A stretch of DNA of 64,000 nucleotides from Octopus sinensis (taxonomy: Eukaryota), in the NCBI RefSeq assembly GCF_006345805.1, contig NC_043013.1, forward strand, positions 13,268,001 through 13,332,000, given 5' to 3'. The position numbers and the translations under genes were made by a program. The notes under the pieces were generated by a model. The model saw only the letters and a program-made list of their open reading frames with translations. It searched no databases and had not been told where the DNA came from. This document shows, one piece after another, positions 1,440-59,300 of this stretch (the first letter of the stretch is position 1; each line of letters begins with the position of its first letter).

Positions 1440-3620
1440 ATATTAATACTCCAGGAAACATATACGGTTTAAGGATTATCTATTTGGAATAAACCAATTA
1501 TAACAGAATTTATATGCTAACCGCTGAAATTAACCAATTTTTCAAAACCCGTAAGGAAAACAGTAAACATTTGGAGAAATACCTTATAACATACCTACAC
1601 ACACACACACACACACACACACATACACGCGCGCGTATCAGGTGGAAGTTATTTTCAATCGAATTTTACGACTGTATAAAATTCTTCAAATGCTTCGATT
1701 ATGTGTGTGTACATACATTTACTTGATAGCTGGCATTTATCAATGTTTTCTCCTACTGTGTTGATGTGCTGTTTTGTATCATCAATAAAATTGCCTGCAT
1801 TTTTGATGACATGGGTATGCTAGTGTATGATACTTTTCATAACCCCTTTAGTGTAATCCTCCACCACATCTTAGAAATTTGGTGATTACTATTTTCTGTG
1901 TTATTATGCTTCATAAGGAATATTATAAAGCCACTGCAACAATGGCAGAGAGAGAGAGAGAGAGAGAGGAGTCAGCATGACTCTCTATTAGACATTAAGT
2001 GAATGCTTAATCAGTCATGTGGCTTTTCTTTTCACATGTTCCAGGATGTCACTTTGTGTAGCAACAGTACCATCTCAAGTATATGAGAACTACATATTTG
2101 ATGGTTTCATCTGAGCTTTATAGAGGATCTGTAGAGTTGATGGGGATGAAATACTGTTTGGTTATGAAGAAGAAGAAGACCAGTTTATTCAGTATTATTT
2201 TTTTTCTATGCAAGATATATTTTTGTTTGTTACAAGAAGTCTTCGGGTATGGTGAGGCCAAGTTGCTTTAGTAACCATCAGTCTTGGAATATTTTCTTGA
2301 TAGGTTTACTGAATGTGTCTTTGTGCTTTTCATTGGAATACGACTAAATTACTCATGTTATCTCTGTAGGGATCTAAATTTTATGTAAATTAAGGTGAAA
2401 TGTATATCTCTATATATCTCTAGTATCTCATCCAGATCTGTTAATGTATGAAAGGAATCAGATACAGAGCAAAGTTACCAAACAAGGGCTTTGACTGCTC
2501 AATATTTGTTTCAGCTATATTCTGTCAGGAATATGTTGTATGGAATCATGATTGTGTTCTTCTGGGAATTATTCAGATGCCTTATGGAATGATTTGTTCC
2601 AGTTGCAATTATTATCAATCTAAGAGAGAGGTTGTTTGGAATTTTGATTTTAAAATGTTAATCAGGGCTGTAGGTGCAATTTTCTTTCAAGTTACGTCAA
2701 ATAAAAGATCGTCCAATACATGAAAATTAAATGACTATTCAGTAACATGTCCTTTTAATTGTTCTCTATTTACACTCTTTCATCTCTTCTTTTTAGTCAT
2801 TTTTAAAGCTAGTTGTGGGGTATTGTATACATTTCTAAGTCTCATATGACTTTGAATGTTACACAAAAGTTTAAATTGATTAAATAAAAATTCTCATATC
2901 ATCATTTGACACTGTTTTTAGTTTAAAAGTTTTCTTCCATTCAAATCCTATGTCAAAACCAGTGTACCATGCTAAAACTATAAATAAGAAGAAAAGAAAT
3001 CATGTGTATCTGTGATAATATGGATTGCATAATCTCCATCAGATAATTGTCACTACTCTCACCTGTTGTACTATTTATATTCAGTAAGGTCTTCTCTCAG
3101 TATAATCTGTTGTAACAAGTTGGAATTCTGTCATTCCTTCTAACATTCAATATCATTTCTTTTAATTTCAGAAAGACGAAATGGACTGCTCAGATGAAGA
3201 GAGGTAATGCAAGAAACATATGCCTAAATCTGTTAATATATAAGTACATATATATATAGCAGGGTTCCAATTATGGTGTATAGGGGATCAGCTGAGATTA
3301 TCCCAGTAATTAGAGATATCTGATCAGTTGAGATTATTTCAGTTATTAGCAAACAAAAACCTCTCCTGGAAATGTTGATAATTTTAAAGCAATGAGCAAG
3401 GGAGATTGTTGATTTCCTTGTAAATTATTATCTCATAATATGATGGATATGTATACTAAATTGCTATACTTCCAAATCTTACTCCATTAGAATATTGGTA
3501 TTATTGATGAATAGTAGAAGGATGGAAATCAACAGAAGGCACAAAAGAATATTTGTTTGGCATTTAATATAATAATCCATCATTTCTCTAGGTTCATATC
3601 TCTTAAGGCAGCTATTTCAT
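1440..3620 (+). repeat. Duplicated intron module A, copy 1 (contains micro-exon A1)
   Basis: Colinear with 8850-10680, 19390-20380 and, inverted, about 39400-40230. ORF-track artefacts 2448-2723 and 9530-9805 are almost identical. Confidence 0.9.
3172..3203 (+). CDS. Micro-exon A1 (32 nt, phase 0->2): KDEMDCSDEE(S)
   Basis: Context atttcttttaatttcAG|AAAGACGAAATGGACTGCTCAGATGAAGAGAG|GTaatg. Splice sites sit at the same positions in four paralogous modules. Confidence 0.68.
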
Positions 3621-4320
3621 TAATAATGCTGATCAACAAAATTCAAATTTTTTGCTGACCTATGCACTAAAGAAAGGACCAAACAAAGGGTCCTCAAGTT
3701 GCCAGATCCTTCTTTTCCAGACTGGCTGCTTCTTAGCATCTTTCTGGCCTGGAGTCTAAAGTCACTAATGACTAGTCTATGCTGGGCTACATTTTTCACC
3801 AGGGTGGGTCTTTGCATTTAAGAGTAGTCATGCATCACGCAGTCTGGTGAGAATGAAATCTATCTGCCTAACAGAGTCACCTAAGTAATAGGTTATCAGG
3901 TGGCTGGCTGGCTTCCTGAAGTTGGTGTTGGAGATCAAAAAGTTATTTGCATCACAGAACTCCAGTCGCCTTGCTCCCTCCTCGCTTCAGGGACCAATTC
4001 CATGGCCCCCATGAACACGATGGTAGATGCTGGGCTGCCGTCCAACATGCCCATTGAAATCCCCAGTCATGAATATGAAATCATTGTCACTCATCTTGGA
4101 GGTAGCCTGCAGAAGAATATCATAAAAGTGGTCCTTCTGTTCATTTTGTAGGCCCACTTGTTGGGTGCAGACAGATATAATTGTAGCTATACTATTCTGC
4201 AAGACTAGCCTGAGCATAAGTACTCTGTCACATACTCTAACTACTTCTATGATCTTATCCACCCATTTCTCGGTTAGGAGTATGCCCACACGACCAACTC
4301 CATCACTATTACCTTCCCAT
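3620..4320 (-). mobile_element. RTE-clade LINE fragment (AP endonuclease region)
   Basis: ORF 3987-4289 reads GILLTEKWVDKIIEV.RVCDRVL...GDFNGHVG. Confidence 0.85.
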
Positions 4321-58329: not shown

Positions 58330-59300
58330 TATATATATATATATTTATGGCTCTACTAATATGTGATATAGTAGCTGCAAATACTAAAAGCAGTATCCAA
58401 CCATACTAAAAGAAAAACTACTACACTGGCCATAATATTATAATAAATAGAAGCCTACTGTAAATATATAAAATATATAACACATATATATAGATCTATC
58501 AATAAGACAGTTCTACTAATTGGAAAAATAATAGATGGCTCTTCTAGTCTGAAGAATAATAGTTTGGTGTATCAGAATAAAAAAATAATAACTTGTACCA
58601 ATGTGTGAAAATATATAAAAATATTCATAAACAAGATATACAACATTCGTTTTATATAAATTCATTGATGAAATTTTCAACAAAGTAGTCATCACAATTC
58701 ATGCAAACAGATCAAGCGAAAATAAAATATAGGAATTTAAAAAGACTTACAATTTTTCGCCAAAATATATCAAGTGATCTGCAAAATCGGCAAAAAATAG
58801 AAGAAAAATTGTTTTTGTATGAAATGGAATAAAGGAAATGTAAAAGGAACTAAAATTTAAGGAATTATATGGCATTTGAAAAGTTATACCAAGAGAAATT
58901 GATTCAGTCAGAGATGAAGGGTGAGAGGTAAGCAAAGAATAAAGGTAAGAATTTAGAAAGAGGTAATTTCTCAAAGAAAGACAAGTAGTAATGTGATGAA
59001 AATTCCTAAGAGTGGCAGAAAAGGTGGAGAAAACGCTATGTGACAGAGGCAAGTGACAAAGATAAGGAATCAAACCATAAAAAATAGATCTATTCACACA
59101 CTCCCTCACACATGTACATTTACAACTTTACCAATATAAAATAGGTTATTAAATAAATATATCAAATCATATCCATGTATATTTAGCGTTTCTGTAAAAT
59201 TATATCCAATGAGGGCTCAGCCATTTAGGATAAGAATCAAACTTGGCAGTTTCATAGATACTTTGCAATTCAACTAGATTCACAGAATCCATATGGCTAA
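58330..59300 (-). repeat. Intron module B, inverted paralog (homologous to 4370-5040, 16540-16720/18440-18960 and 21067-21190)
   Basis: Reverse complement aligns by eye with the B1 and B2 flanks and with segment C. Confidence 0.85.
58751..58778 (-). CDS. Micro-exon B' (28 nt, phase 2->0): SLDIFWRKI
   Basis: Context ttgccgattttgcAG|ATCACTTGATATATTTTGGCGAAAAATT|GTaagt. Same length and S-x-D-x-x-W pattern as B2, and phase-compatible with A4 downstream. Confidence 0.68.

Follow-up and report, generated by a model that had tools for sequence, protein, structure and literature searches.

Paired micro-exons of complementary phase in a segmentally duplicated TRPM2-like (TRPM-beta) locus of Octopus sinensis

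We analysed a stretch of 64,000 nucleotides (nt) from the genome of Octopus sinensis (assembly GCF_006345805.1, contig NC_043013.1, chromosome C17, positions 13,268,001 to 13,332,000 of the forward strand), which is referred to below as the window and in which positions are counted from its first letter. The window is AT-rich, contains many open reading frames (ORFs) of retroelements, and belongs to a segmentally duplicated TRPM2-like (TRPM-beta) locus at about C17:13.05-13.86 Mb. A search with the Pfam domain LSDAT_euk detected approximately 12 TRPM SLOG units in this interval, on both strands. An earlier inspection of the window from its letters alone, the sequence-only reading, had proposed that it encodes a TRPM-like channel with an N-terminus assembled from seven exons of 28-38 nt, of two types (A and B), each lying at the same position within a repeated intron module. 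All seven micro-exons were recovered, bordered by AG on the upstream side and GT on the downstream side, with strikingly similar intron flanks.

On the plus strand, A1 (3172..3203, 32 nt, phase 0->2, KDEMDCSDEE-S; A module 2215-3627) is followed by B1 (4768..4804, 37 nt, phase 2->0, DLLDEYFEQLKR), A2 (10253..10284, 32 nt, KDDKDSSEED-R; module 9294-10676), B2 (18524..18551, 28 nt, SADDSWLEN) and A3 (19827..19858, 32 nt, EPEIDQLFTK). On the minus strand, B' (58751..58778, 28 nt, SLDIFWRKI) precedes A4 (39536..39573, 38 nt, DIKKWMQENIKL-R), which belongs to the 'A-W' class of exons carrying the conserved TRPM N-terminal motif W-x-x-E-N-I-K. The lengths of the A exons are thus all 2 mod 3 and those of the B exons all 1 mod 3, which fits a phase of 0->2 for type A and of 2->0 for type B. 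The proposal that each A+B pair measures 60 or 69 nt held for A1+B1 (69) and A2+B2 (60) but failed for B'+A4, which sums to 66. Self-BLAST and profile scans revealed exactly four A and four B modules in the window. In the self-BLAST, the A1 and A2 modules share 88% identity over 1.4 kb; A3 and A4 have modules with about 65% identity to these two, and the B modules are likewise related to one another. The B2 module is in addition 98% identical to a copy at C17:13821503.

Downstream of A4 on the minus strand we found exon 3 (37628..37712, NATDKELSKPCDAFGEVKFPEDGWNIAK, with an alternative acceptor at ~37747 in the O. vulgaris-type model), SLOG exon 1 (34122..34302, FVRVDHQISMEITINLIKRLWYSSLPNLLISVIGERQDF...) and SLOG (MHR1/2) exon 2 (28277..28440, AWIISDGLHTGVAKHIGK...), the last two matched by Pfam. 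All five minus-strand exons are flanked by AG/GT and form a single open frame (B'-A4-exon 3-SLOG exon 1-SLOG exon 2), and this chain, like the 53-residue translation of the plus-strand exons, reads as originally given. The conceptual minus-strand peptide matches LSDAT_euk over positions 1-114 of 266 (E = 1.3e-31), so that half a domain is encoded before an assembly gap at 21525..21624. The motif W-I-x-E-N-I-K upstream of SLOG is encoded by A4 as DIKKWMQENIKLR and is missing from A1-A3, and the W-x-x-E-N-I-K motif of A4 also occurs in the full-length octopus channels P0165, P0169 and P0164. The closest vertebrate matches are TRPM2, with 42-45% identity over the N-terminal region. Domain content and published phylogeny both uphold the assignment of the micro-exons to the TRPM2-like (TRPM-beta) family.

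To see how the modules vary, we aligned the copies in the genome, using the intron modules as BLAST queries as the sequence-only reading had recommended. Genome-wide searches returned about 25-45 copies, and approximately 24 A and 25 B copies were aligned. Nearly all copies lie in C17:13.05-13.84 Mb, within the TRPM cluster, or on small unplaced contigs resembling alternative copies of this region; outside it, full modules give way to fragments of 40-45 bp and one 75-bp piece on C23. In most paralogues the first SLOG exon is preceded at 6-10 kb by an A module of the same orientation, and a B module occurs a few kb before that. The A exons measure 32, 35, 38 or 41 nt, and frame 0 is open in all of them, while the other two frames mostly contain stops. 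The B exons measure 28, 37, 40, 43, 46, 49, 52, 76 or 88 nt (the 46-nt value by visual count in the alignment), all of them 1 mod 3; frame +1 is the only one open throughout, the others mostly containing stops. AG/GT is retained almost everywhere. Among paralogues the intron flanks (40-60 nt) are 62-78% identical, whereas the exon bodies are only 31-49% identical. That indels occur only in threes despite such low identity of the exon bodies shows a constraint on the reading frame. This pattern of conservation is far beyond chance and identifies the micro-exons, as judged from aligned sequences, as coding exons with the phases proposed earlier. The better-kept flanks fit very short exons that rely on strong intronic splice signals, including the 'tttactaat' upstream of B.

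Since the modules are repeated and lie amid many genuine retroelements, they could be conceived as a transposable element or dispersed repeat that merely happens to hold AG...GT. This is extremely improbable: besides the confinement of full-module copies to the cluster and the small contigs, the copies occupy constant positions with respect to SLOG exons and keep both the mod-3 length constraint and an open frame. A transposon origin is effectively refuted by the distribution of copies. Two classes can be recognized among the A exons, namely the 'A-W' exons (35-41 nt, including A4), which encode [DK]KKW[IM]QENIKLR, and a 32-nt class (A0-A3 and relatives), which has lost the motif and most of whose copies are acidic.

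We then compared the exons with public octopus gene models retrieved with the SLOG exon 1 peptide as a HMMER query. The plus-strand 53-residue peptide is an exact substring (residues 1219-1271) of RefSeq protein XP_036366207.1 (LOC115221041), so the idea that standard annotation would miss the array does not stand: the exons are already present in RefSeq and GenBank models. In the literature searched, by contrast, we found no description of the array, of octopus TRPM micro-exon arrays in general, or of duplicated or serial SLOG units. XP_036366207.1 has 1272 residues and three SLOG domains according to Pfam, and the array follows these domains as an acidic linker. It ends in ...HWQ DLHLEVFATQR LSSDLDHDDDFFMARQM KDEMDCSDEES DLLDEYFEQLKR KDDKDSSEEDR SADDSWLEN EPEIDQLFTKM, which corresponds to A0, B0 and then A1, B1, A2, B2 and A3, with A0 and B0 located just left of the window (C17:13261514 and 13265296). 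Its final Met-stop is a read-through of the A3 donor (AT|gtaa; window 19857-19864), 1.7 kb before the gap. The model of LOC115221041 is therefore artefactually truncated, and the plus-strand exons of the window are its last coding exons.

The orthologues indicate how the array continues. In O. vulgaris, CAI9735657.1 (1283 residues) is encoded by a gene of 238 kb that runs on one strand from SLOG unit 1 to the channel, in the order SLOG unit 1, B0 A1 B1 A2 B2 A3, B3 (FTNITSSGHSGYKYGYK), A (NIVKYSREEES), B4 and A-W (DDVQELVQEDIKLR), followed by exon 3, SLOG unit 2, the TRPM2 domain, Ion_trans and the TRP box (Pfam). The A2, B2 and A3 peptides of the window are identical in this protein, and the true continuation of A3 would be expected to be a B3 exon (FTNI[IT]SSGHSGYKYGYK). 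The O. bimaculoides models XP_052830018-21 have the same array but start in the tail of a SLOG unit. A separate 198-residue record, P0157 (MetaClust UPI00071E422B), consists of the array alone. The order and frame proposed for the plus-strand exons are exactly those spliced in XP_036366207.1, CAI9735657.1 and XP_052830018.1. A TRPM phylogeny of 2026 (PMC13143021), which reassigns some octopus 'TRPM-like 2' sequences, places XP_052830018 under TRPM-beta in its Table S1; membership in TRPS (soromelastatin) was considered and rejected on the basis of this listing of an array-bearing orthologue. The array accounts for about 110-150 residues within models of 924-1283 residues carrying SLOG and channel domains, and the segment that it encodes is acidic, with an isoelectric point (pI) of ~4.0-4.3 and 29 D+E in 81 residues.

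The sequence-only reading had regarded the two sets of micro-exons as parts of one expandable, hypervariable TRPM N-terminus, or of a paralogue pair, in which A+B units are skipped in pairs to generate isoform diversity. The phases do permit pairwise skipping, and there are signs of change in the array. The unplaced contig C9010 (1824-17687) holds a 97%-identical version with A0 and B0 and then two A1/B1-like pairs, EDEMDGSGEE / DLEVDEYFEQLKR and EDEMDSSDEE / DLLDKIFKKLKR, in place of A1/B1 and A2/B2. This contig represents either a haplotype whose array differs or a further paralogue, and its differing copy content shows that the array changed recently, by duplication or gene conversion. Moreover, in O. 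bimaculoides a difference of 13 residues between A0 and B0 distinguishes isoform X1 from X2, and isoform X4 has an internal first exon splicing into B3; the neighbouring O. sinensis channel gene (see below) has an isoform X4 in which small N-terminal exons encoding 70 residues are skipped in frame. The last is the sole annotated case of block-wise skipping in the O. sinensis genome and concerns exons other than those of this array. Against this reading, no model skips an A+B pair of this array, and every public model examined that reaches the array includes the copies in series. O. vulgaris and O. bimaculoides agree in the number and order of the array exons, with 70.7% identity in the array and 77.6% in the SLOG-MHR region. 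By these values the array evolves somewhat faster than SLOG-MHR, yet it is not hypervariable between species. Of the expandability that had been claimed, the variation in copy content between C9010 and the chromosome is borne out. The array is not a simple N-terminus: the models of O. sinensis and O. vulgaris place it after a SLOG unit, and those of O. bimaculoides begin in the tail of such a unit. In the window itself, finally, the TRPM exons lie on the strand opposite to the array. Taken together, a self-standing N-terminus diversified by pair skipping is distinctly unlikely.

The relation between the two strands is explained by the gap at 21525..21624, where the contig with the plus-strand array meets an inverted paralogue copy and both genes are truncated. 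None of the seven exons touches the gap, and the sequence across it is not continuous. To its right, 21625..45072 is an inverted duplicate (minus strand, BLASTN, 94-96%) of C17:13198001-13222433, which holds the plus-strand SLOG unit located upstream of the array. The homology to this twin starts at the first base past the gap, 21625 being collinear, in inverted orientation, with C17:13222433, and the third SLOG exon of the twin (C17:13223093) lies only 660 bp beyond the point matching the right edge of the gap, indicating that the minus-strand gene was cut by the gap. To its left, 17000-20706 is a direct 95% copy of a paralogous array at C17:13.820-13.824 Mb, which goes on into B3, B4, an A-W exon and a SLOG unit. 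A fuzzy peptide search of the window found no B3, A, B4 or A-W exon of this continuation and no third SLOG exon. Because the two sides of the gap are not continuous and the strand switches, a chain of exons from A3 to 28277-28440 is invalid as assembled. The plus- and minus-strand micro-exons do not make up the N-terminus of one channel in this window; that the array leads into SLOG and channel exons is true of the orthologues but not of the window. Likewise, B' and A4 are not an array but the ordinary single B-A pair found upstream of most paralogues, and the minus-strand unit is the 5' end of an inverted paralogue, truncated at the gap after SLOG exon 2.

We also noted an alternative 5' end in the minus-strand unit. 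A candidate alternative first exon with a GT donor (39681..39729, minus strand, MSPFMFCTTSIHFCLQ) lies ~105 nt upstream of A4 and is 88% identical to the first exon of CAI9735657.1. The O. vulgaris model begins at a small exon mapping to this position, with A4 in another frame and with the upstream acceptor of exon 3; when 39681-39729 is spliced to A4 in the window, A4 is read in a second open frame (YKEMDAGKHKIE).

The explanation that we favour, with a probability of roughly 0.8, is that tandem duplication of a phase-complementary B+A pair in a TRPM-beta gene built an acidic linker whose exons are spliced serially in the models. In this explanation, one type B exon (2->0) and one type A exon (0->2) would be the two small exons ahead of exon 3 and SLOG/MHR1-2 in this family, and the ancestral A exon would have encoded the conserved TRPM N-terminal motif W-[IM]-x-E-N-I-K-L-R. 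As the pair is a multiple of 3 nt, its tandem duplication keeps the frame, and repeated duplication could have produced the array A0 B0 A1 B1 A2 B2 A3, followed in the orthologues by B3, A, B4 and the motif-bearing A. The extra copies would have lost the motif and become an acidic, presumably disordered segment (pI ~4), which may connect the following SLOG unit and the channel body with an upstream SLOG unit, or with the phase-0 tail exon of that unit. The dependence of such short exons on conserved intronic signals would explain why the flanks are better kept than the exon bodies. The model of LOC115221041 stops at A3 because the next exons lie beyond the scaffold gap. An origin of the array by tandem duplication of a frame-preserving pair had already been proposed by the sequence-only reading, and our results agree with it.

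Several points weigh against this explanation. B' is the weakest element: about 60 nt are missing from its conserved upstream flank, among them the 'tttactaat' kept in other B modules, and none of the protein models compared contains this exon. For the minus-strand unit as a whole, no matching annotated protein was found in the size range searched, and it is perhaps a copy in decay or a product of false duplication. In addition, expression is supported only indirectly, through gene models, and the inclusion of all array exons serially in one mRNA is a prediction from these. Several of them show obvious chimerism: in P0002 the model passes from one unit to another, and in P0001 and P0151 A4 is read in another frame. 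Beside B', at 55890..55970 on the plus strand, self-BLAST and profile scans detected an inverted B-module fragment of 81 bp that is absent from the sequence-only list and contains a perfect copy of the B' exon with both splice sites. The upstream flank of this fragment is nearer to the canonical module than that of B' itself, and it indicates a small local rearrangement beside retroelement fragments.

Such damage leads to the possibility that the window copies are non-functional relics, the inverted unit and possibly all of 13.29-13.8 Mb being a false duplication (a reversed haplotig) or a decaying segmental duplicate, in which the micro-exons are conserved merely through young age. Centred on the gap, the units mirror one another, with a plus arm at 13.055, 13.093, 13.149 and 13.203 Mb and a minus arm at 13.308, 13.381, 13.426 and 13.468 Mb; the tail exons of the 13.381 unit adjoin the right end of the window on the minus strand. 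The arms (C17:13.05-13.57 Mb) comprise ~250 kb each, are 94-96% identical where measured, and match in their A-exon types. This structure may be a genuine palindromic duplication or an inverted false duplication or scaffolding artefact, and suspicion is reasonable because the O. vulgaris gene occupies 238 kb while the same parts extend over ~1.2 Mb in this assembly. Along with the damaged flank of B', its nearby inverted fragment and the missing protein model, the A4-B' intron is enlarged by repeat insertions. However, the identity of 94-96% with many indels is below the 97% of the likely haplotig C9010, and none of the minus-strand exons has lost its splice sites or its open frame. Even old copies with 31-49% exon identity retain both. 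Furthermore, the plus-strand array of the window is the best match to the O. vulgaris model, with A2, B2 and A3 identical, while the copy at 13.81 Mb differs. We consider relic status of the window copies possible but not probable.

The favoured explanation, a linker grown by duplication of B+A pairs, concerns the region before the channel, and no part of the channel body lies in the window. In tblastn searches with octopus models and an approximate human TRPM2 sequence, no TRPM exon was found in the window beyond exon 3 and the two SLOG exons. The same searches found no exon of MHR3/4 (the Pfam TRPM2 domain) in the window; the orthologous models P0156 and P0160 do contain this region. A six-transmembrane pore (Ion_trans) with TRP box was found neither in the window nor in C17:13.05-13.86 Mb, but both are present in CAI9735657.1 and XP_036366250.1. 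The nearest set of pore and TRP-box exons is at C17:14.400-14.407 Mb on the plus strand and belongs to the RefSeq channel gene XP_036366250-54 (isoforms X1-X5; C17:13.725-14.41 Mb, ~0.7 Mb). Its isoforms start at SLOG units near 13.73-13.86 Mb, and its N-terminus contains another alternating pair of duplicated small exons (…EVSGQKPKQ / PETTETQIQ…).

These observations raise a wider scenario, in which C17 13.05-14.41 Mb is one giant cassette-type TRPM locus where tandem SLOG units share the single channel body at 14.40 Mb. Each unit may have a separate array of duplicated small exons ahead of it, and the units may be joined either serially, giving multi-SLOG channels, or alternatively, through different promoters or splicing. 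In both cases one pore would acquire a range of different sensing heads, for which the variable exons of clustered protocadherins and UGT1A offer an analogue. A tail exon ends in phase 0 and an A exon starts in phase 0, so every unit junction would be in frame. Three hints are consistent with this scenario: a single set of pore and TRP-box exons lies downstream of at least seven plus-strand SLOG units, X5 uses a different 5' SLOG unit from X1-X4, and models of both O. sinensis and O. vulgaris contain 2-3 SLOG domains. We regard a single giant locus as unlikely.

The array can be compared with several known systems. Like mollusc TRPM-beta (TRPM2-like, or 'TRPM member-like 2'; XP_052830018.1 and XP_036366250.1), the locus has an LSDAT_euk SLOG domain and a W-x-x-E-N-I-K exon (A4), and its orthologues have the TRPM2 domain, the six-transmembrane pore and the TRP box. 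It departs from TRPM-beta in that the window holds the 5' part only (micro-exons and half a SLOG domain), that octopus models have 2-3 consecutive SLOG domains linked by the micro-exon array, and that there are no NUDT9H or pore exons within 0.5 Mb. The likeness to schistosome micro-exon genes (MEGs) drawn by the sequence-only reading extends to the runs of very short exons whose bodies diverge faster among copies than the flanking introns. In MEGs, however, the exons are symmetric and can be skipped singly, whereas the octopus exons are asymmetric in phase (A 2 mod 3, B 1 mod 3), only pairs being frame-neutral; and MEGs encode small secreted proteins made mostly of micro-exons, whereas the octopus array is a small part of a presumably cytosolic protein of >900 residues.

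Tandem exon duplication is known both as a builder of repeats (collagen, nebulin) and as the source of mutually exclusive exons (Dscam). As in those cases, the octopus array contains homologous exons of the same phase class, derived from local duplication, with conserved splice signals, but here the unit is a phase-complementary pair and not a single symmetric exon. Unlike mutually exclusive exons, which appear as one copy per transcript, the octopus copies are serial in the models. Neuronal microexons (see PMC8797185) resemble the array in being exons of <=40 nt with strongly conserved intronic flanks; they are single, usually symmetric, regulated and located within structured domains, whereas the octopus exons form a tandem array.

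Other features of the window are repeats. The B1->A2 intron contains a retroelement of the long interspersed nuclear element type (5798..8574, minus strand) with endonuclease and reverse transcriptase ORFs (Pfam Exo_endo_phos_2 and RVT_1, 6305-8574), and the A2->B2 intron contains a retroelement with a reverse transcriptase ORF (11537-14135, minus strand; confirmed by Pfam at 12433-13032). Much of the irregularity in spacing between array exons stems from these two insertions. In the right half of the window, two inverted arms of 3,023 bp (47476-50498 and 51864-54886), 99.97% identical, surround a centre of 1.4 kb and probably represent a young repeat element. An Asn-rich ORF of 947 residues (50497-53340) runs from this centre into one arm, and a related ORF of 333 residues is located at 62526-63527. 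Neither ORF has a Pfam match, and the Penelope-like identity that had been suspected for the longer one was dropped on this result.

For the curation of the genome, LOC115221041 is cut at a scaffold gap that is central to a 250-kb mirror duplication, which is maybe an assembly error. With respect to the evolution of the family, an octopus TRPM2-like gene lengthened its pre-SLOG segment by duplication of frame-locked exon pairs, and whole SLOG units were apparently duplicated in frame as well. If transcripts confirm it, this would be a clean natural example of phase-complementary exon pairs growing a protein linker. As a lead, the wider locus, in which many SLOG units accompany a single pore, is the more intriguing. 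TRPM channels use their N-terminal SLOG/MHR region to detect ligands and temperature, and, again if transcripts confirm it, such duplication would be a possible route to channels with several or alternative sensing heads in an animal with unusual peripheral chemo- and thermosensation.

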